Origin: Marsupella aquatica
Lineage: Eukaryota; Plantae; Marchantiophyta
Length of the DNA: 64,000 bases
NCBI GenBank assembly: GCA_973895155.1
Contig: OZ316898.1
Span: forward strand, 21,416,122-21,480,121
Direction of reading: 5' to 3'
Part shown: in pieces, positions 12,216-56,400 of the stretch
Layout of the letters: each line of letters starts with the position of its first letter
How positions within the stretch are numbered: the stretch's first letter is position 1
Made by a program: the position numbers and the translations under genes
Notes under the pieces: generated by a model
Told to the model about the DNA's origin: nothing
The model's database searches: none
The model's input: only the letters and a program-made list of their open reading frames with translations

Positions 12216-12238
12216 TTAGGGTTTAGGGTTTAGGGTTT
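12216..12238 (+). repeat. Short interstitial TTTAGGG repeat
   Basis: TTAGGG TTTAGGG TTTAGGG TTT. Confidence 0.85.
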
Positions 12239-21588: not shown

Positions 21589-23701
21589 CTACAGCTTTCT
21601 GCCAAACACGCGACATCGTTCGCAACGTTTCTTGCAGATATCCTCAAGCATCTTCGCTGCTGCTGTACGTTCCTGCTGCATTTGTTTTGCCCGGGATCTC
21701 ATCAATTGACGTTCTTCCTTACCGCCGTTAGAAAAGTCATCGAGCCATTCAGCTATAAGTTTCCCGAGTTGGTACATGTCCGATCCCTTGGTGTATCTTT
21801 TCCTTTTCCTTTTCCTTTTCCTTTTGTCATTGTCTTCTTCCAACGTTTCCGCATCCCAACCCGTTAAGTCCTCACCAACCCATACTTCATTGTCGTCTCC
21901 AGCAGCTTCCAAGTCTATGATCACCCATTTCCATTCACCCAAATCATTTACTTTGATAACGTTGGGCCACCTTATGTCCCTGTGGGTGTAGCCTTTCATG
22001 TGCAAGTCCGCAAGGCCGCATAACATGTCATGCGTGGCATTTACTAAATCCTTGCAATCCTTAGGCTTTGCATATGGGTCACCAACAGGTTGTAGTCGCA
22101 ATACTGTTCTAGCCTTGGATCGTCGGACGGATATAAGTTGGATCAGGTACCTGGAGCCAGCGATTTTTTCATACAGGCATTCTATCGCGGTCACCTTCTC
22201 TTTCGTCAATCCTGGGATTTCCTTCGTCACGCAGTCAGGATAGATCGTCACTGCTCCACCATAAACTCTTGCTATTGGCTTATATAATGCCAAGGGGATG
22301 TCACTATCCAGTTCTTCCTGTAGTTTCTGTAGGAGACAGTGCATCCGAATGGTGCTATGTAGGAACTTGGCTACATCGCTCAACATATTCAAGTCATAGA
22401 GTTGTGAGATACTTTCACAAAGAATTTCCTTGCCTCGCGGATAGAGCTTCAGCCATTGAAACTGCCTTCCACCGGAGCAACCACCAATCACATAAGGGAG
22501 CTTACCATAGAACAAAGGGCTCCATGCCTTTAATTTTGAGGTGTTCTCACCTGCAGCCTCGTGCCGAAGTGCCGGGTCTGTCTTATTCTCCCATCGGAGA
22601 ATGAGACAATCCCTCACAAACAGCTGAAAATCTGGTCTTAAAAGCGGTTTTAGTGGTCGCGATGCTGGAGTAGTAGTCGAGGGATTGGGTGAATCCAGTA
22701 ACCAGACCAAACCTTGTAATTTTGCGTTTGCTGGAGCCTCGTCATTTAATAATGAGATGAAATCTCCAGTGAGTTTAGCCAATTCATGTGAGCTCGTGGC
22801 CTCATTGCCTGGACAATGACGCATTATCTCTCCGAACGCACTGTCGCAGAAGGTTGCCAACTCTCCCGCCACTGCGGGAATATCAAGCTCCACCAGCTCA
22901 GAAGAGCATATTTTCTTGAATTTTACAAGATTGCGAATTGGGAGCGGTACTGGTGTCTGGGACAAAAACTCCGAGAGTTCATGGGCACTTCGTGGGAGCG
23001 TCGGAGGTGGTTCCAACAGTTTCCCAAAATAGCGCTCTCTAGCTTCAATATTAGCTTTTGCCTTCTTTGAAAGTTTTGCCTTCTTTGAAAGTCGCGCTCC
23101 CTCTGCGTACACACCAATCACGAAGTGTTGAAGAGGAAGAGAAAAACAGGAAAGTCATCCAATAATCACTCGAGCAATGAGCCCTACAAATTTGGCACGA
23201 TTCCGGCAGAAATGCTTTATCGGTTCGGCAAAGCAGGAAGAGACACAGGACACCTGTTATTGCAACAGTACTTTCCAAACAAATGCCAGAGCAAGGGCGA
23301 CAGCTGCTGTCCATGATACCCTTGATCACTTTTCAGCAAAGAAAACCAAGCAGCAACAGAGGGGTGCTCAAAGGAAAAAACTCAACGAAAAGACAAACCA
23401 GAACAAGAACGAGAAGATACTGACGAGAAACACATTGCTGTGAAATTCAGTTGGAATTACCATCCGTAGAGTTTCGTTTTTGAAGCTGAATTGCCGACTC
23501 AACTGCCAGTATCAATCCGCCAGGTGCCTTTGGGAACAGGCGCTGGATTAAGTCTTCGAGGCGCTTTTCCGACATCACTAGCAACGTAGATACTCCGACG
23601 CAGTCAAGCCATAGTTTCGCAGCAACGTCTCTCAGTCGTGCTTCGTCAGGAATAGTTCTCCGAAGCAGGTTCATAATATTTTCTTCTTCACCACTCGCCA
23701 T
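21589..23701 (-). CDS. Crinkler (CRN)-type protein: short N-terminal helical domain, REase-like domain and CR-kinase
   Basis: Exon 1 is 23701-23461 (GTAATT donor) and exon 2 is 23102-21589 (ACGCAG acceptor); they join in frame. Motifs: LRPDF..LRWENK..KL.AW.P..YG.LPY, then HRDIRWPNV, IIDLE, SDMYQLG. Confidence 0.75.
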
Positions 23702-41275: not shown

Positions 41276-41280
41276 TTATT

Positions 41281-41390
41281 CACCAATTACAGTGTAATAG
41301 TTGCACCAACTATAGTGTAATAGTTTCACTAACTGCAATGTAATAGTTTCATCAACTATAGTGTAGTAGTTCCACCAACTATAAATAGTA
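41281..41390. repeat. ~23-bp tandem repeat
   Basis: CACCAACTATAGTGTAATAGTT(T/G) x4-5. Confidence 0.85.
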
Positions 41391-41894
41391 CTAGCACATT
41401 TATAGGTACTTGATGTTTGTCACTTGGTTTCCATCCAAGGGCCAAGGCATTGATCCATGTCCTCTTGGAAAGCACAAAAGTAACACGATAAATAAAGTAA
41501 AAAGAAGCACATTCTCCTCATTCTCATTGTTTGATCAATTGTGTTATCGTAATGCTGTAAGGAGCTCTTTCCCTATATATATTATCCGTGCACTCCGCAT
41601 GCAATATGCACGGCCGCCCGGCCGGTTTTTGCACCCAATACAAGGCTAGTGCACGGCCGGATTTTGCACTAAGCAGACCACAACTGCACAACAAAGCCGG
41701 ATCTCAACCAACTACTAAACCCACTGTGACCCACGTGACCAGCCCTCTGCAACCATGCCCATTTGTGGCACATACCCATATACCCAAACCCTCAGCCGTG
41801 TGCATGCACCGTATAATACAGCCGATCACAGTCTAGTATATAAGCCCTATATTACATAGTCACCATTTCTCTAGCTTGACCTCATACCAAGACC

Positions 41895-43293: not shown

Positions 43294-46200
43294 CTACGTT
43301 TGATGCCAGGACTTACCGTTGTCCAATGCCGATGCCGATGCCGATGCAGGTTGGGTACGATTGGGCGTCGATTGTGCTGGTGCCGTCGATAGGGGTGGCT
43401 TTACAGGACGTTCCTTCTTTGCCCGTGACATCTCCAGGAGCCGATTGATCTCTGCCAACTGCCTTTTCGTCTGGGCCTTTAGAAGTTTGTTGACACCTTG
43501 TAATCGTTCGGCCTCATCCCCCGCGGAATCCCGCTGTTGTCGGGCTTCCTCCAAGTCTGCCGCCAGAGCTGCAATCTCCGATCTAAACCCTGCCACCTTC
43601 CGAAGGTGAAATTCGGCTCTCTCTTTCTCGGCCCCCAGTTCCTCCGCTTTAGCCCGGATGTCATCCAACCTCTGAATTGACACGGACTTTGCCTCCGCCA
43701 GCTCCTTTGCTGCTTGCGTTTGTAGGTCAACATTTCGTTGATCTCTCGTTTGTTGCAATTTCTCCAGGTCCCCACTTATTCTGGCGGTCTTCTCTCTTTC
43801 TGCGTCCAACTCCTTATTGTGACTCTCCATGAGATTGGCGACTTGATGAACAAAACTTTCCTTCAAACTCTTCACCGAATCTTCATGTAGTCGTTGTTCA
43901 TCCTGCATCATCCGGTTAACATCGTGTTGCTCCGCGACTTGGCGTTTTATCTCTTCCACCGAACCATGTAAGTCTGCCAATTTGTGTTCCATCTCCGCAC
44001 TGTGGGCGGACTTCCGTCGCTCGGCCTCTAACACCTTGGCGCTCTTGTCCCTTTCCGCCTGTAACTCCTTCCGATGAACCTCCATAACATGGGCTTTCAT
44101 GTGCTCTTCGTGCAACGCTTGCTGATGTGCTATCTCCAAACTTTGCTTCAGGTGCAAAATGTCTTCCGCATCTTGCTTGTGTGCATCACTGATCGAATTG
44201 AGCTCGTGATTGAGGTCGTGTAGGACCGCCTACATATTTCCCATCCCGGCCTGCTTCGCATCCATTTCTCGAAGCCTCCGGATGACCTCCGCCTTCATGA
44301 GTTTCTCGACCTCCAACTTGGACAAAATGTTCTGGCACTGGGCATTTCGCTGCCAGAGGAGCGGCCTGGCGTCCATGTGACGATGCAAAATTTTGATTAG
44401 AAGCTTGCCTACCTCGTCAGCACAATACTTGGAAAGCTCGACGGCATAAGCGGACCTTGGCTCATCCGTATGAACTGGACGCCAAACTTTCGTGTCCTGC
44501 TGGCAGCTCATTTTCTCGTAGTAGTCCAAATCCTGAATTGGTTGCTGGGCGTTTAGGATTTTCTCTTGAATAAATGCCGGCCAGGGACCGCCGGGAATGT
44601 CGTGCTCCTGGGACATGTCTTCATCCGGGGGCAATTGGTGAGCTTCTGCGTTTGTGAATAGTGACTGTTGGGGAGCTATCATCAGTGTTGATTCCGGTAA
44701 TATTGTCATCACCTCCGTTTGCCCCACGCTCCCCACCGGCCGGTCTTGACCGAGCACCCCTGACTCTCCAGGCGGGCAGCACCCTTCTGCAATGGTCTGT
44801 TGTGTGTCTATGCCGGGGCCCTCAAAACCATGGCCTGGGCCTGGAGCCTCGTCGGATGCAAGGGGTTGCTGGTTTTCGCAGCGGTGAATGTTGGCCGCAG
44901 TGGAGGCCAACGGGTGTATCGACTCCCCGTCCACCGCTCGAGTTGCTGTACCCTCTCTACACTCACTTGCCACTGTTGCAGCACCCTCTGCTTCGTGCCG
45001 AACACCATTTCCGGAGTCGGAATGGTTGTCCTGGAACTTCCCCGAAGTCTTTCCGCTCTGTTGAATTTCAGCCGCAGTGGAGGCCAACTGCTTTAGAGAC
45101 TCCCCGCCCCACAGGTCGGGTTGATATACCTTCTTTGCGCTCCCTCGCTACCACCGCAGCACTCTCCGCTTCACGTCGAACGCCATTTCCGAAGTTGGCA
45201 TGGGTGTCTTGGAACTCCCCCGAAGTCTTAGTCAGGTTTGTCGCCGTGGGACGTAATGATTCCTGACCGTCTGGTTCGCCATCCGATCCCGAACTGGGAA
45301 CCCTTGTCGCTGGATCCTCCGCAACATCCCCCATTCCCAGCAGTAAAGGCTCATGATTCCACAGCAGCCCCATCTGCACCTTGTCTTGGGGAGCTTTGCC
45401 GACCCCGCCATCAGTATGGGGACCGGCTGATGCGAACAGAAGTCTCCGCGCGTACCTGTATATGATTGGTAAGTGATATGCTAACTTTGATGATGAGGAG
45501 GTCTGTAAGTTTTCTCTGGAAAAATCAAGGTTACCCAAAAGCTTTTTATACAGAAACCCACAGTAGTTTAGGTTCGGTCCGAGAGTCTGCAACAACCAAC
45601 AGTGGCGCTTTGGTATTTCTTCATCAGGATCGGTCATCCAGAGTGCCGCCCTCAAGAATTCCAAGAGCTCCAGCTGATGTTTGCTGGTGCACTGGTTCTT
45701 CAGGAACCCAGTTGTGGTGGGTGCTCCTCTGAAATAGGTCCACTGGTGATCACGTATGTACACCCTCCCTTGGATCGCTCCCGGTCGACCTCTGGGCAAG
45801 CGGAAAACCTCGGAGACAACCTGCTCGTCAAATTGGAATTCCCTGCCACTGATGCACCCAACCTTCCGCTTGGGGTCCCAAGTCCCCACAAAGTCCCGCA
45901 TCTCCTGTTCTGACACATCGTCTGAATGCAACCACGGCAGGTTTATGAAGGCGGAGAGGCCTGTGTTGTCTGTTGAAGTGTCATATCGATTGGTATCAAT
46001 GTTGGCGAATGCTTCGTCCTCGATCTTTGGGAACCTTAGCTCTAGGTTTGTTGGCAGTGTTCCATTCCACCCCTGCGAATCGCAATGTGTTGGTGGAGAT
46101 GCAGCAGCCTGTGCGTCAAACGGCGGCTCCTCTTCTCTGCCCTCAAGTGCCGCAACCCCGCTGGGTGTGGTCCGGGTCCTCTTCTTATGTGCCACTCCAG

Positions 46201-46327
46201 GGGTTTCTTGATTGTCCTCCTCAGTGGACGTTGCTGTTGCATCTGTTGCCAATTTCCTCTTCATCGGGGGCTCCGGTGCCATGGTAAGGCTCTGCAGGTC
46301 CCAGTGTGATAAAAATTGCCCGCACAA
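43294..46327 (-). pseudogene. Broken ~1000-codon gene: plant-transposon-protein-like domain, internal repeat and long coiled coil
   Basis: Three ORFs joined by one frameshift (~45085) and one in-frame TAG (44230-44232). EMRDFVGTWD..ISGREFQFDEQVVSEVFRLP resembles retroelement accessory (Transposase_32-like) domains. The C-terminus is E/K/Q/L-rich. Confidence 0.55.
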
Positions 46328-46409
46328 ACTTCAATTACGCTTTCAAAAACCCTTTTAAATAACCCTAAGCGTTTTGTCGACCAAGATGTGCTTATCGCCG
46401 CGCCTTGGA

Positions 46410-46745
46410 GCCCCAAAACGAGTGAGAGAATGATAGTCCCTTCTACTCACTCTTGTCAAACCTTGCTTGCGCATCACCCTGAAAGAGCGCGATAGAATCA
46501 CAGTCCCTTCTACTCACTCTGTTGAACCTCGGATGCCCACAACCCTGAAAGAGCACGAGAGAATCATAGTCCCTTCTTCTCACTCTGTCAAACCTCGGAT
46601 GCCCACAACCTTGAAAGAGCACGGCAAAATGATAGTCCCATCTCCTCACTCTTGTCGAAACTCGGCCCACAGCCCACAAAGAGCGAGAGAGATTGATAGT
46701 CCCAGCTCCTCACTCTAGACGAACCTCGCTTGCCCACAAACCCTA
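46410..46745. repeat. ~66-bp tandem repeat (5 copies)
   Basis: AAAGAGC..GAGAAT.ATAGTCCC.TCT.CTCACTCT..AACCTCGG.TGCCCACAACC recurs at ~46481, 46548, 46613 and 46678. Confidence 0.9.
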
Positions 46746-48766: not shown

Positions 48767-49272
48767 TTTAGGGTTTAGGGTTTAGGGTGGACATGGCCAA
48801 AGCATGGACTAGGCCGGATTAACATAATAATATATTTCAATTCAATGAGACCAAAGAATCTCTCCAAACCATCGACGACATAGATTTCAAATTTCCATCT
48901 CATCCCTTGATAAAACCTTTCATTATTATAATTGCAGGAGAAGCTTTTTGATGGAGGTTTTTCAATGAGCCTAGCATTTCAATGAAGCGTTTCAGAGGTG
49001 ACGGATTTCTGAATCATTGTACCCTTCTTTGAAAGCATAAAAGTGTTTAGGGTTTAGGGTTAAGAGATTGATTTCAAATTTCCCACTCTCTCTCTCTCGC
49101 TCGCAATGAGCCAATCGTTCGGGGATGTATGGTTGTATGGTTTAGGGTAACATCAATGGTTTGGGCTTTAGGGTTTGAGATTTTCCCTGCAGTTTTCATT
49201 TTTGTAGGTTTTTGATTACCATTAGTCAGATGAATTTCGGCCGTTTTACGACTACTTTAGCTGGTTTAGGGT
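48767..49272 (+). repeat. Cluster of TTTAGGG telomere-like motifs
   Basis: (TTTAGGG)3 at 48767, (TTTAGGG)2 at ~49046, and single copies at ~49141, ~49168 and ~49265. Confidence 0.8.
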
Positions 49273-50149: not shown

Positions 50150-51387
50150 CTAGCTGAATACCTGTGCGTTGCACACAAGAAGTCGTGTCGGCCAAGATGT
50201 CATTGAGAAAAAATGATGTAGTGTCAGCCAAGAGGTCGTGGAGAAAAAAGATGTAGTGAAGAGAAAAGATGTTGTGTTGCCCAAGAGGTCGTTGAGAGAA
50301 ACGATGTCGTGTCGCCCAAGAGGTCGTTGAGAGAAAAGAAGTTGCGTTGGTCAAGATGACGTTGAGAAAAAAGAGATGTTGTATTGGCCAAGAGGTCGTT
50401 GAAAGAAAATATGTAGTGTCAACCAAGAGGTCGTGGAGAAAAAAGATGTCTTGTCGCCCCAGAGGTCATTGAGAAATAAAGATATCGTGTCGCCCAAGAA
50501 GACATTGAGAAAAAAACATGTGTTGGCCAAGAGATCATTGAGCAAAAAATGTCATGTCGGCCAAGAAGGGTTTAGGGGAAAAAAGACGTTGTGTCGGCCA
50601 AGATGTCGTTGAGAAAAAAATTTCATGTTGGCGAAGATGTTGAGATAAAAAAATGTTGTGTCGGCCAAGACATCGTTCACGGAAAATACCCGTGCGTTGC
50701 ACAAAAGATATTGTTAAGAAATAAGATGTCGTGTTGCCCAAGATGTTGTTAAGTGGAAGATATCACAAAGTAAAATGATGTCTTTAAAAAAGTAGTTTTG
50801 CGAAACATGCCATTGTGTGAAAGATGTTATGAAATAAAAAAATCAAGGAAACTAAGAAGGAGTGAGTCTTTTTCTTTGTTTTGTTTTTTTACCCAAAATG
50901 CCCATGCATTTGAATGGCGACCACTATAAATTAACTAACTTCCAAAGAGTTAAATCTCTTTTTTAAGAGCAAAAGCCAAAATAATATAATATCAACCTAC
51001 TCTCTTCCCCTTAGTGCTCACTCCCTACCAAAACCATTACCTCAAGTAAATCTTTTCACTTTGATGCCCCATGCCAAATGTACTCTAAAATAATAATATA
51101 CTTACACTTTAATGCTCCATACCAAAAAGTATTATACGCAAGCTACAAAATAACTACAGTAACACATGCAAGTACTCTATGACATATTATATCTACTTTG
51201 TATTATAATTTACATACCTACCTTGTACTATAACTTACAGCCAATTTTAGGTTCCCATCTCACTCAATCCAAGAGCCATAAATAATTCTAGAAAATATCC
51301 GATGGCTTAGCTTTGTTCCCTCCTTTTTCATTTTTGTAACGGGGACGAACGACTACAACTGGCGGGATTAGTTATTATAGTAGTAGA
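50150..51387 (-). mobile_element. Non-autonomous Helitron (1238 bp)
   Basis: 5' end A|TCTACTACTATAATAAC at 51387. 3' end TGTGC-AAC-GCACA hairpin plus GGTATTCAG-CTAG|T at 50150. Inserted at an A|T site with no TSD. Confidence 0.88.
50180..50752. repeat. ~35-bp minisatellite inside the Helitron
   Basis: GTCGTGTCGGCCAAGA.GTCGTTGAGAAAAAAGAT, about 15 degenerate copies. Confidence 0.9.
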
Positions 51388-52986
51388 TATATGACCAGCA
51401 TAGACAAAACCAGAGTATTACCGTGACAACATGGAGCTTCAGTTGCGCAAGCAAATGAACAGCATATCCATGGAAGCAAGTTGTTGACATTTGTCAATTA
51501 TCTCAGTGTCGGTAAACGCATCCTACTGCCAGATCTTTCGTCAAAGACAGTGAATAATGGAGTCACCTCAATCTGTTGAGGAACAAATTAAGATTGTTTC
51601 CACAGTCATGGTAATTACAAACAAAGAGAGAAGAAGAAAGGTACAGGGTAGGCGAGGTCCAGCTAATTAAATAATTGAAAATCCTGCCAGAAGCTATGGT
51701 GGCTTAGAGCTAAGGAAACCGAGGAAAGCATACACCTTCTTAAGCTTTGCACAGGAGAGACAACAGACAACTAGGACGAAATCTTGCAAGAGGAGTCCTC
51801 GGTGGCTGATGTGGTGTTTTGCCGGCCTGGAATGTTTGAGGGGTCGTTCAGGCCCGAGAAGACTTGCACCAAGTTGAGCATTTCCTGAGGTATTCGGTTG
51901 GAGGAGGAGGAGCAACATTTGCCCTCTCACCATACACGGCATGCATCCTGTCGAAGTGAGGGCAGATTTTGTCGAGGTTGTCCTCCGACGTCATTCCTGC
52001 CCAAAACTCCGCCATTGATAAACCAGCTCCTAAATTGTTTTTGGCGTCCTTATATTATCCTTCATGGCGAGAGCCTCCTTATACCCTAAACCGTAACGTC
52101 AAAACCTTTTTCCCAAGTTATCTCCCGTGCCTACAAATTTGGGGAAACCGTTGGCATGGAGATGAACTTGTCCCCACAGGCACCCTACGAGAGGATCCAT
52201 TCAGCATATCAAAACTCTTTGCATCTTCCGATTCATATCGCTTCCACGAACCTGCCCACAATTGGATGCGACCATGTCCGTTCCGTGTTCATTCACCTGC
52301 GAGTGTACCACTACACTACTGCTGGATCCTGCGACACTCCCCATCCAGACAATACTGGAAATGTAGCAGCGCCCCACATCGAATTTGCCATACCTTCTCT
52401 TTCTACTCCCGACTTTCACACGGAAAATTAGTAATCACAGAGAGAGGTGAGCTTGAATTTTGAAACCCTACACCCTAAACCCTCCAAAATGTTGCGCATT
52501 ACCACCAGTAGCAGACAAGTTGCAGAGCAAAGTCGGCCCAGGTGTTCAAATGGGAACAAGACGGGCTTTCCTTAACCTAGGGTAAACCCGGCTTTGTAAG
52601 AGGCCCCCTTGGTTTTGCATGGCCGAAAACTCTGTCCCGGGCGGCTTTCCGGACAAATTGTGCTCGTGACCATGTTCAATGGCGCCAAGTTTGAGATGCC
52701 CTAGTAGTAGTAGTAGTAGGAGTACTGTAGTAGAGGCTTCACCACTTGGCTTTCCGGTCATTAACCAGGCCTTATGGGATGGAGTAGGAGCCATCCAAGA
52801 GTTGTGCTCAGATGAGGGATGAAGTACGGACCAATAATGAGTTTGTCCGTGGCTACCGTTGGGATACTCCCTTCAGATATGGAGATGGGACCATGGATCT
52901 GGAAGGAAAAATTCTACAAATTAAGTAGCAAAGAATGAGAAGGCTGTGTTGTAGGGGCCTAAGTTTAGGGTGAGCCGTTGCGGAAG

Positions 52987-54609
52987 ATGGAAGCCGACGG
53001 GAGGGATGTCCGTGGCACGGAGGAGATGAAGCACGAGTTGCAACGTAAGTTGGCAGAGCTTGCCATCCTAAATGGACAGTACGCAGCTGAGAACCTGCTG
53101 CTTAAGGAGAAGGTGGCCAGGGGGGATAAGGCGTTGGGTGCAGTCCGGAAGCAGCGTGATATGCTGGCGTTTCGGGTTGATGATGCTTGCAAGGCTGCTT
53201 CAACAAAGCAAATGGATGTGTGCACTGAAATGACGAAGGATCACCAGGCGACAAGAGAGGCGTCGGAGCGGGAACCGAGTGATGTTCCCGAGGTGGCCGC
53301 TAGACAGTCGGACGATTTGAGGAGTCAGCGGACCGCGGCCTTGGAGGAAGTCAAGAGCCGGAATGGAGAATCGAGGGATGTTCCCAAGGGGGCCGCTAGC
53401 CAGTTGCGTGCTCTGATGAGTCAGCGGACTGCGGCCTTGGATGAAGTCGAGAGCCGGAATGGCGACATAGTGATGCAGTTTGCGACCTTGCGCATCTCAA
53501 ATGAATCTGAACCTAAGGCGAAGGAAGACAGGCAGAATGGGAAGCCAGATGCACTTGCCGGAGAAGCAGAAGAAGTGGAGCGGAGGAACAAGTACTTGCG
53601 GGCCCTAGCGGACAGTCAGATGCAGAAATGTTGCAAGTGCGCAGAAGCAGGGAAGGAGTGGCGAGGAGGATTATTAGGTTCACGACGACCCGGCAAATCG
53701 GCCACTTATGAATGGGAGGAGCATCCTAGTTTTTGTAGGGAATTCAAGCTTTTGTTGGGAAAGTTTAGGGTAAAAAGAATCTGCACCGATGTCCACGAGC
53801 TCGTTAGGCAGAAGAATCTACTCTTCCCTACTGCTGATCTACCTGTGTGGCTGAGCGAAAGTCTTATCGTTAAGGATCGGAATGACAAGCCGCTGTTGTA
53901 TTTTTTGAAACATGCCCTTCAAAGACCTTTCCGAAATAGAGATCCTACGTTGGAAGGATTAGAAGCTCTTGAAGAGCTTGTGGAGGTGTACCCGCCAAAT
54001 CGACCTGCATCTGCAAATGGCAGATTCAAGGGACAAGCTATTCCCCTTGGCTCGGGTGTACACCATCTGGCATTTTGGCATGGCACCGGTCACAAACATG
54101 TCCCAGGGGTTTTGTCGCAGCACATCATTGGATCCGGGAAGAAGTTGAATTGGATCGTAGAGTTCATAAACAAGTTCACGCCGGTGACACAGGCGATTGG
54201 AGCGCTCTTTGAATGCATCGACAGTGACATGTACGAAACATATAAGGCAATGTTTGATGCTTTCGCTCCTGGAGCAGCCAGTTATATGCATTCCACTTCC
54301 CAAAATTGTTTCTTAGGGATGGCAATAAATACACAACTCGCTCCTGGTCCGTACAGAGATACAAATGACCCTGTGGATGGCTGGGTTGTGAATGTAGCGT
54401 TTGGTGATTTTGAGGGTGGACGTTTGGAAGTGCCACAACTTGGTTTACAATTTGTATTACAACCTGGAGATGTGGTGTTTATGCGGTCGGCCGTTCTGCA
54501 ACACTCGATATCGAGGATAACGTCCAGCTCTAGGTTCGGCGTAGTGTTTTTTACTCACGAAGCAAACTTTGCAGAGAATCTTCGCAAGTCACGGATCAGT
54601 ACCGAGTAA
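52987..54609 (+). CDS. Coiled-coil + TET/JBP-like 2OG-Fe(II) dioxygenase (HxD reads YxD)
   Basis: Intronless 540-codon ORF from the first ATG. C-terminus FLGMAIN..PYRDTND..GW..FGDFEGGRL.VPQLG..LQPGDVVFMRSAVLQH..RFGVVFFTH fits the DSBH dioxygenase pattern. Confidence 0.7.
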   Translation: MEADGRDVRGTEEMKHELQRKLAELAILNGQYAAENLLLKEKVARGDKALGAVRKQRDMLAFRVDDACKAASTKQMDVCTEMTKDHQATREASEREPSDVPEVAARQSDDLRSQRTAALEEVKSRNGESRDVPKGAASQLRALMSQRTAALDEVESRNGDIVMQFATLRISNESEPKAKEDRQNGKPDALAGEAEEVERRNKYLRALADSQMQKCCKCAEAGKEWRGGLLGSRRPGKSATYEWEEHPSFCREFKLLLGKFRVKRICTDVHELVRQKNLLFPTADLPVWLSESLIVKDRNDKPLLYFLKHALQRPFRNRDPTLEGLEALEELVEVYPPNRPASANGRFKGQAIPLGSGVHHLAFWHGTGHKHVPGVLSQHIIGSGKKLNWIVEFINKFTPVTQAIGALFECIDSDMYETYKAMFDAFAPGAASYMHSTSQNCFLGMAINTQLAPGPYRDTNDPVDGWVVNVAFGDFEGGRLEVPQLGLQFVLQPGDVVFMRSAVLQHSISRITSSSRFGVVFFTHEANFAENLRKSRISTE

Positions 54610-54849
54610 GATTAGAGCCATTGGGGCTGTAGGTCTGTGGCGGGGTGTGAGGATGGTTTCTTGGTACTCTGCTCTCACTATGCAATTTGTGAACATTCTT
54701 CAATGAAGATATGATGGATGACATCGAACAAGATATCCCATTGAATTGCTGGTTTGGTAGCGCTAGTGGAGCAATGAGAAGCATTTTTCAATGAAAATGA
54801 GCTTCAGAGCAACACCAATTGTCTGTGCTCCTTTCGATGGATTCCAGTT

Positions 54850-56400
54850 TTAAGACACTTGGAAATGATCTCGGAGGTACGCCATCCAGATCCATTCTCC
54901 GACAATCCCCTTTTTGTGATGTCTCATTTTACGTGCTTCAGCCTGTTTCTTAAAGACCTCCTTCATCCTTTTCTCTCCATGCGATCAGTGGTTTCCGGAA
55001 GGCTCCTGTGTTTGTGTGTTCGCCCCCTAAGAGACCTTTTTTCCAGTTCGTCAAAAGGCCTTTCTTAAAAAGTGCCAGCATCATAAGGTGGTGAGTTGGG
55101 ATAGCCTTGAGAATGTGTTTTAGCATTATCACCCTACCAGCAAACATGAGGCTGCTGTTCGCCCATGTGTGGAGACGCTTCCTCAACTTGCCCAGAAGGA
55201 AATTTGCATCTTGTGAAGGTCGAGTCTTACACCTCCAAGGCAAATACATATCTCTGCCTCTTTAGCAATTTTGCATCCCGTTTCCTTGGGCCAGTCAGGA
55301 GATGCCATTCTCCAGGTAGATCGGAATATGATTTGAGACCTTTTGACGTTCAAGACAGCTCCCGAGATGTTCTCGAACCTTTGGATCACCTCACGAGCAG
55401 CAACGAATTTCTCTGCAGTGTCTTCGAGGAATAGTCCCGTGTCATCAGCGAAGAGCTGGTGGCAAAGACTACTCCCATTACAGAGTTGCAATGCATTGAC
55501 GACCCCTGCATCCAATTGTTGTTTGAGCCTGGCCATCAGAGGTTGTTTGGTGAGTGTCAAAAGGATGCTGGAGAGCGGACATCCCTGTCAACTTCTGTGA
55601 GGGTAAGCATAGTGAGTGGTCGCTAATTTGACAACTGTAGCAAGTCCTGACTCTTGGGCATGAGTTCAATAACTTTGGCTAGTGGCTTTGGTTGTCATGG
55701 TTCCGTGTTAATGTAAGCCCGATTAACAGCAGAGTAAGTAGGACCCATGTACGACCATCCCTTTAGCAACATCTTGATGGTGACTCCGTTGATTCCTGGT
55801 GACTTTTCTTTTGGCATCCCTGTAACCACTTTAAGAATATCTGCATCTTCGGTTGTCTACCTAGATACACTGCCTTGGTTACCTCGACATCTCCTCCCTG
55901 TCCTTTTGTTTCCTTTTTGTGCTTTCTTCGGTTTGTTGGGACCTCTCTCTGTACGTCCACTCTATTAGCATCTGAAGCAGGCATCCGAGAGAGGACGGTA
56001 AATTATTACATCCACCTGGTAGTTTCCCACTCCTGGCACCGCAATGTTGATGTACTCAATCGGGTCTTCATATTACATGAAACACATCCTCGTATGTGAG
56101 AGAATTTACTCCTGGATTTATGTGTCTGCGCATATATAGCACAGTTCCAACCTCGGCAAGCATAATATTCAAAAGCAGGGTTGAACAGCGACATGTCAAT
56201 CCAAACAGGAGCCCTGGTAGATTTCATCGGCTTAGCGTCAAAGTCAGGCGTCCGGGGCATGGCCACTACCATCTTCCATCAGAATGTGTTTCGGGAATTC
56301 GATATCGATTCAATATCAATGTTTAAGGTAGTCGCGTGTAAGATTGAAGTCCAGAGTGTATAGAATGATTCCTCTCTTCTGTAGGTGAAGTATTCTGCTA
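54850..56400 (-). mobile_element. L1-like LINE relic (ORF1 fragment plus RT C-terminal part)
   Basis: GCPLS..L...QPL, HQLFADDT, FENISGAVLNVKRS, LHTW..LMFAGRVIMLKHIL.AIP; upstream APVWID..FSHIRGCV (ORF1-like). Frameshifted and internally deleted. Confidence 0.85.

Follow-up and report, generated by a model that had tools for sequence, protein, structure and literature searches.

Does a land plant carry a gene belonging to the TET/JBP nucleic-acid dioxygenase family and, if it does, could the product of that gene still work? To our knowledge, land plants are thought to remove 5-methylcytosine (5mC) solely by way of DNA glycosylases, and they are said to lack TET/JBP enzymes. The question is raised by a single open reading frame (ORF) at 52987–54609 of a 64,000-nucleotide (nt) stretch of the genome of Marsupella aquatica (Marchantiophyta; contig OZ316898.1 of assembly GCA_973895155.1), which we refer to as the window. 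An earlier reading of its letters, here called the original prediction, took this ORF for an intact TET/JBP-like 2-oxoglutarate (2OG)-Fe(II) dioxygenase, derived from a fungus or carried by a transposable element and serving as an anti-silencing system. Both its sequence and its predicted fold make the protein a TET/JBP homologue. The gene is probably, though some way from certainly, a paralogue that was recently disabled at its first iron ligand, is otherwise well conserved, is fused in frame to a 211-residue helical extension, and sits, in one copy, within a transposon-rich part of a plant-type genome.

The ORF itself is as it had been described. In the ORF listing, the frame opens on the forward strand at 52978 with TTG and reaches its first ATG at 52987, from which 540 codons and a stop follow; the sequence has no in-frame stop across 52969–54606, and no intron is necessary. 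The motif string that first drew attention to it can be read in the translation (..PYRDTNDPVDGW..GDFEGGRLEVPQLG..PGDVVFMRS..LQHS..RFGVVFFTH), with the distal His (H506) and the Arg (R516) at 54502 and 54532, exactly where they had been placed. Only the part from M212 to the C-terminus is common to relatives, and we refer to it as the module.

Several independent comparisons place the module in the TET/JBP family. The Pfam family Tet_JBP (PF12851) matches residues 391–525 (E 2.9e-11); the score is 43.3 bits where the gathering score is 34.9, and the match spans positions 31–164 of the 164 in the model; NCBIfam, a bacterial and archaeal library, gave no match. Among PDB sequences, the sole meaningful matches were NgTet1 (E 8e-6) and CcTet (E 5e-4), and a profile built from the close family found NgTet1 at 4e-8. 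The AlphaFold2 model, made from 14 aligned sequences, has predicted local distance difference test (pLDDT) values of mostly 80–95 over residues 240–525. With this model as query, Foldseek returned CcTet (E 3e-15), NgTet1 (1e-8), TET2 (1e-7), CMD1 (2e-6) and FTO (2e-4), with small-molecule oxygenases coming in only at 3.5e-4 or worse. VIA-align gave a Z score of 24.0 for CcTet (270 residues, 3.4 Å), followed by TET2 (19.5), NgTet1 (18.3) and CMD1 (16.1), and levelled off at about 13.5 for AlkB, FTO, prolyl hydroxylases and other generic enzymes with a double-stranded beta-helix. The predicted model thus retains the double-stranded beta-helix fold and resembles the solved TET/JBP enzymes more than it does other 2OG oxygenases. 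DNA-base dioxygenases rank at the top and, because no prolyl or small-molecule hydroxylase provides the best structural match, the TET/JBP assignment stands.

We then compared the active site with that of NgTet1, taking residue roles from the published description of that enzyme (PMC4678852) and mapping residues through the printed alignments (chain index minus 6 gives the published number at each residue checked). Table 1 lists the equivalents. D458, D461, H506, R516, V520, F522 and H524 are all kept, and the first iron ligand alone is changed; for NgTet1 N147 and R224 no reliable equivalent could be mapped in the window protein. The 2OG-binding Arg is in place about ten residues past the distal His, and D461, V520, F522 and H524 are the counterparts of the NgTet1 residues that hold a flipped 5-methylpyrimidine. 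The facial triad, normally HxD...H, here reads Y456-x-D458...H506. The original prediction had written the start of this motif as "x-R-D", which corresponds to Y456-R457-D458 with codon 456 (54352–54354) reading TAC; it had noticed the change but did not draw the consequence of a Tyr at the first iron ligand. Because of this Tyr, the window copy very probably cannot coordinate Fe(II) properly or oxidize DNA, and would be catalytically dead; this judgement rests on the alignment and on analogy with other TETs. We know of no 2OG oxygenase in which Tyr replaces the first His. Lacking that His, the protein is filed as a TET/JBP homologue and not as an active TET, and the proposed anti-silencing role is doubtful for this copy because its first iron ligand is Tyr. 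In TET1, the pair H1671Y and D1673A is the standard inactivating combination (PMC6754513).

Table 1. Features of the TET/JBP-like ORF, with positions in the window and equivalent NgTet1 residues
Feature	Position	Strand	NgTet1 equivalent and its role in NgTet1	Basis
Whole ORF, 540 codons + stop	52987..54609	+		ORF listing and sequence
N-terminal 211-residue helical, coiled-coil-like extension, only in the window copy	52987..53619	+		Alignment, AlphaFold2, composition
Tandem duplication in frame, two units of 96 nt (32 aa) at 83% identity	53272..53463	+		Repeat search
Conserved TET/JBP module M212–E540 (329 residues), sole part common to relatives	53620..54606	+		
Y456-R457-D458, HxD iron motif with Tyr (TAC) for His	54352..54360	+	Y456: H229, first iron ligand; D458: D231, iron ligand	Aligns to NgTet1 PHKD
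D461	54367..54369	+	D234, cytosine N4 contact, C favoured over T	Alignments; Asp in 131/143 relatives
H506, distal iron-binding His	54502..54504	+	H279, distal iron ligand	Alignments; His in 122/125
R516, 2-oxoglutarate-binding Arg	54532..54534	+	R289, 2-oxoglutarate binding	Alignments; Arg in 117/119
V520, F522, H524	54544..54558	+	V293, methyl pocket; F295, base stacking; H297, N3 contact	Alignments, conservation

How unusual is this Tyr among relatives? A word-index protein search made the family look tiny, with only four matches to the whole protein and nine to a profile, but an exhaustive HMMER search recovered 993 cluster representatives (numbered here with the prefix P) with E values of 1e-3 or below, of which 329 reach 1e-10 and 52 reach 1e-30. 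The first-ligand position is His in all 13 aligned relatives and, among the 143 representatives that cover the column, in 134, the remainder being three Tyr and six other residues. As nine of the 143 lack the HxD His, naturally "dead" copies recur among TET/JBP relatives. These nine (P0080, P0090, P0100, P0106, P0121, P0124, P0127, P0144 and P0191) have Tyr in three cases, Arg and Asp in two each, and Gln and Val in one each.

The taxonomic setting of these relatives bears on where the gene came from. P0001–P0004 and P0031 are 40–48% identical to the window protein across the whole module, with the nearest relative at 46–48%, a distance at which synonymous sites are therefore saturated. A quick maximum-likelihood tree covered 40 sequences with lengths of 290–800 residues; it excluded shorter fragments as well as representatives numbered above P0134. 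It joins the window protein to P0001 with a support of 98 in the Shimodaira–Hasegawa-like approximate likelihood ratio test (SH-aLRT), within a seven-member clade (support 96) that also holds P0002. The relatives that can be placed taxonomically, which are a subset, are all fungi. P0070 is Watsoniomyces obsoletus KAI9882494.1, and the more distant P0080, with Arg in place of the HxD His, is Phylliscum demangeonii KAI9825553.1, both from lichinomycete metagenome-assembled genomes; P0035 is a protein of the basidiomycete Schizopora paradoxa. A 226-kb metagenome contig from the European Nucleotide Archive (ENA) harbours P0033, which belongs to the P0002 lineage. This contig also contains a HET-domain gene, a PNP_UDP gene with a TPR_10/TPR_12 gene next after it, and dynamin and C2-domain ORFs that are long and uninterrupted, and we read it as coming from a filamentous ascomycete. 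The neighbours found in the ESM Atlas are Tet_JBP clusters in which Basidiomycota are commonest. No annotated plant protein occurs among the relatives, and none of the 13 proteins with a cluster source name is from a plant. A fungal origin of the window gene fits these data; the original prediction's "fungal-derived" agrees with every placeable relative and with the tree clade, although the origin itself is inferred and most members lie on unlabelled contigs.

The loci of these relatives yielded observations of their own. On the 226-kb ascomycete-like contig, the TET copy of the same clade (L005:10001-10642) is truncated and frameshifted, and is located just after the PNP_UDP and TPR_10/TPR_12 pair, with the HET-domain gene beyond it. 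The TET homologue P0004, on a metagenome contig of 4.2 kb, has an XS-domain gene (L001:2082-2861, reverse strand) as its neighbour. The XS domain is mostly found in plants (SGS3/IDN2-type), and because this gene adjoins P0004, some of the unlabelled relatives may come from plants. In three independent metagenome contigs (L006:3611-9723, L007:3049-6194 and L008:1562-7503), P0034, a TET/JBP homologue of 488 residues and 30% identity, and a large DEAD/ResIII helicase encoded on the other strand are arranged tail to tail; the helicase has 1,499 residues and an OrsD domain in the first and 1,442 residues in the third, and in the second it is a 510-residue Helicase_C fragment. A scan of metagenome loci gave nine short soil contigs with no useful context.

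Apart from the iron site, the window copy is still well conserved and not heavily decayed. Of 69 columns otherwise invariant among six further non-redundant family members it deviates at eight, within the range of 1–10 found for those members themselves, and the observed/expected ratio of CpG is 0.83–0.87 in the ORF versus 0.63 in the window. Repeat-induced point mutation (RIP) was considered as a source of the His-to-Tyr change and rejected, since the module has a TpA/ApT of 0.68 and a (CpA+TpG)/(ApC+GpT) of 1.28, which is no RIP signature.

We therefore favour, as probable, the recently disabled paralogue described at the outset. Its history might have run as follows: a gene of fungal origin, whose ancestral product would have acted on 5mC in DNA, may have become fused in frame with a helical extension whose composition differs from its own, and a presumably recent His-to-Tyr change at the first iron ligand would have cost the window copy its Fe(II) binding and its oxidation of DNA. 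Several points weigh against this account. The 540-codon frame is fully open and the module is conserved like that of its relatives, which exceeds expectation for a long-dead pseudogene. In TET1, the change from His to Tyr was tested jointly with that from Asp to Ala and not by itself, so that the loss of activity is taken over from other TETs. An assembly error or a polymorphism at one base (CAC to TAC) would give the same picture. Finally, most close relatives, including the sister P0001, lie on unlabelled contigs from metagenomes or the Sequence Read Archive (SRA), and a "fungal" clade could in this way hide bryophytes.

The N-terminal extension is found in this copy only. Relatives are 323–344 residues long and start at the position of M212 (nt 53620), residues 1–211 are lacking in 13 of 13 aligned relatives, and these residues have no counterpart in the relatives' loci, in 217 fetched proteins or in PDB sequences. 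The 211 upstream codons are open beyond chance, with the frame staying open in only 5e-5 of mononucleotide shuffles, and their G+C content by codon position (0.64/0.43/0.635) has a coding-like periodicity. Because G+C at third positions is 0.635 in the extension and 0.459 in the TET module, the contrast points to a chimeric origin of the ORF. AlphaFold2 predicts five long helices (residues 9–45, 50–93, 102–124, 134–169 and 191–216), and heptad a/d positions are hydrophobic at a frequency of 0.6–0.8, compared with 0.35–0.44 overall; these two features make the coiled coil of the original prediction plausible as a model. The two units of the 32-residue duplication differ at 16 nt, spread 5/5/6 over the codon positions and altering 11 of 32 residues. 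This even spread of differences, most of which change an amino acid, suggests relaxed constraint on the duplicated segment. A CCKC sequence that had also been remarked upon is present at residues 215–218, but relatives have no cysteines there, and we rejected it as a zinc- or metal-binding motif for that lack of conservation.

An open frame with such an extension could also belong to a retained pseudoenzyme: a protein that is expressed and under selection as a non-catalytic binder of 5mC-containing DNA, oligomerized through its coiled coil, and that functions as a reader, or else competes or partners with active paralogues. Mammalian TETs have established roles that are independent of catalysis, and the state of the gene would suit this proposal, in that the base-contact and 2OG residues are intact save for one iron ligand, the module is as conserved as in other members, CpG is less depleted than in the flanks, and the extension is in frame with coding-like periodicity. 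We nonetheless hold it to be rather unlikely, given the mostly amino-acid-changing and evenly spread differences between the repeat units, an extension that has no relatives in any of the collections searched, and non-His variants which, at nine in 143, look like sporadic decay and not like a maintained class.

The same conserved residues could be invoked for an active dioxygenase, if the Tyr reflected a rare allele or a mistake in sequencing or assembly, or if Tyr456 were tolerated at the metal site. TAC differs from CAC at a single base, and the catalytic features are otherwise all intact; the window sequence nonetheless reads TAC, and a change of His to Tyr is what has been used to kill TET1. 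We regard an active enzyme as improbable.

Could the gene be, or have been, the cargo of a transposon? Iyer et al. in 2014 reportedly found fungal TET/JBP genes to be often linked to KDZ transposons, and the gene might by analogy with such KDZ- or Plavaka-linked genes be an anti-silencing factor for its element. The region is indeed rich in transposons (Copia elements, a fragment of a long interspersed nuclear element (LINE) and tandem arrays), and Plavaka elements are on record from streptophytes including moss (PMC13519894). The surroundings of the gene, however, speak against it. We ran Pfam on 20 open frames of 79–167 residues, chosen from the stop-to-stop list (75 residues or more) for 46.4–60.5 kb, and within about 8 kb on either side no transposase was found, KDZ and Plavaka included, the sole match being RVT_1 of the LINE on the opposite strand. 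Repeat searches around the gene revealed no terminal inverted repeats, no long terminal repeats or other long direct repeats and no target-site duplications; self-BLAST found no second copy of the gene in the window; and tblastx against 19 relatives' loci had nothing in common with them outside 53600–54620. In the 64 kb examined there is thus nothing to bear out a gene "carried" by a transposable element and, with the iron site broken as well, we consider a transposon cargo that acts as an anti-silencing factor very unlikely.

The DNA around the gene is of plant type, a conclusion supported by the following two observations. The plant telomere-type motif CCCTAAACCCT (TTTAGGG-type, with one mismatch allowed) occurs 16 times in the window compared with 1.16 expected, a number that 0 of 100 shuffles reached, whereas a TTAGGG-type control motif occurs 0 times with 0.88 expected; and the named relatives of the Copia polyprotein in the window are angiosperm elements. 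More than 21 Mb of a single chromosome-scale sequence precedes the window. The original prediction's placement of a TET-like gene in plant DNA is in keeping with all of this. Fungal contamination or a chimeric assembly join, which the wholly fungal set of placeable relatives and a Pkinase_fungal match in the same window might bring to mind, is barely credible in the face of a plant-type Copia element, TTTAGGG-type motifs on both sides of the gene, a position deep within one sequence, a base composition continuous with the flanks and a nearest relative that is only 46–48% identical.

Further features of the window can be described briefly. Sites of CCCTAAACCCT include 12218-12235(-), 48770-48787(-), 49042-49059(-), 50567-50577(-) and 52466-52483(+), and one copy, some 500 nt upstream of the TET start codon, is placed like a telo-box. 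A decayed LINE fragment at 54953-55587 on the reverse strand (RVT_1 E 7e-6, with a "FADD" motif) adjoins the 3′ end of the TET ORF; judging by typical plant LINEs, we estimate that it lacks roughly 700 nt at its own 3′ end. Upstream of the gene there is unclassified sequence and an array of tandem repeats of about 35 nt (50157-50758), which spans about 600 nt and lies 2.2 kb from the gene. Other arrays are found at 46387-46651 (66-nt unit, four copies) and 41279-41393 (23-nt unit, four overlapping 46-nt copies). On the reverse strand at 21592-23121, a 510-residue ORF matches Pkinase_fungal with 27.1 bits against a gathering score of 24.1 and is a second "fungal-type" gene in the window. Also on the reverse strand, three collinear ORFs of 287, 285 and 419 residues (43294-46327) occupy a GC-rich block (0.54) with internal repeats of 177–178 nt; they matched no Pfam family, and the ESM Atlas linked them only weakly (below 0.9) to streptophyte transposon-like clusters. 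An Rfam search returned nothing at gathering scores.

A TET/JBP gene in plant-type chromosomal DNA, nearest to genes of fungi, bears on how plants remove 5mC and on fungus-to-bryophyte gene transfer, and a TET/JBP family in such DNA would surprise a specialist. No plant TET is reported in the accessible part of the literature that pairs JBP with Marchantia or land plants; an older mention of bryophyte TET/JBP genes may exist. Transfer from fungi to bryophytes has been documented for other genes (PMC11906373). Since its iron site is broken, the window copy is a poor choice for activity testing; its use lies in being a naturally catalytic-dead variant and in marking TET/JBP turnover in the host genome. 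One can imagine a land plant that acquired a TET/JBP family from a fungus and has kept this coiled-coil member, dead at its iron site but with its 5mC pocket intact, as a non-catalytic 5mC reader or regulator beside active paralogues, and such a plant would possess a 5mC-oxidation system with its own built-in antagonist, but we put this forward as a long shot.

Among the systems already described, the green-lineage precedent nearest to the window protein is CMD1 of Chlamydomonas reinhardtii (PDB 7cy4-7cy8), the known green-algal TET homologue, which belongs to the same fold family (Z about 16). The fungal and amoeboflagellate enzymes match clearly better, and we see no sign of descent from algal genes. 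CMD1 is also a much larger protein and uses vitamin C as co-substrate. The closest relatives in sequence form an unnamed fungal-type clade (P0001–P0004, P0031, P0067, KAI9882494.1 and KAI9825553.1), whose members start at the same Met, M212, and are 40–48% identical to the window protein. They have no N-terminal extension, and those aligned as close relatives retain the HxD His, unlike the window protein; the placeable members are ascomycete fungi, whereas the window copy lies in plant-type DNA.

The closest match in predicted fold is CcTet of Coprinopsis cinerea (PDB 7vpn, 8jkk and 7w5p), which shares the Pfam family Tet_JBP and is a stand-alone catalytic module of a size like that of the window module. 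The two are only 15–18% identical, and CcTet has a full HxD...H where the window protein has YxD...H, and lacks an N-terminal coiled-coil extension, which the window protein has. The top sequence match in the PDB is NgTet1 of Naegleria gruberi (PDB 4lt5, 5cg8 and 5cg9). Equivalents of its D231, D234, H279, R289, V293, F295 and H297 are all present, its H229 corresponds to Tyr456, and the part of the module before the beta-helix core aligns poorly by sequence. Mammalian TET1–3 have the fold in common with the window protein (Z 19.5 for TET2); unlike them, it lacks a Cys-rich domain, a CXXC domain and a large insert, and at the base-contact position it has Asp (D461), as in NgTet1, and not Asn. 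Its replacement of His by Tyr is the same change, in the same motif, as in the dead TET1 H1671Y/D1673A.

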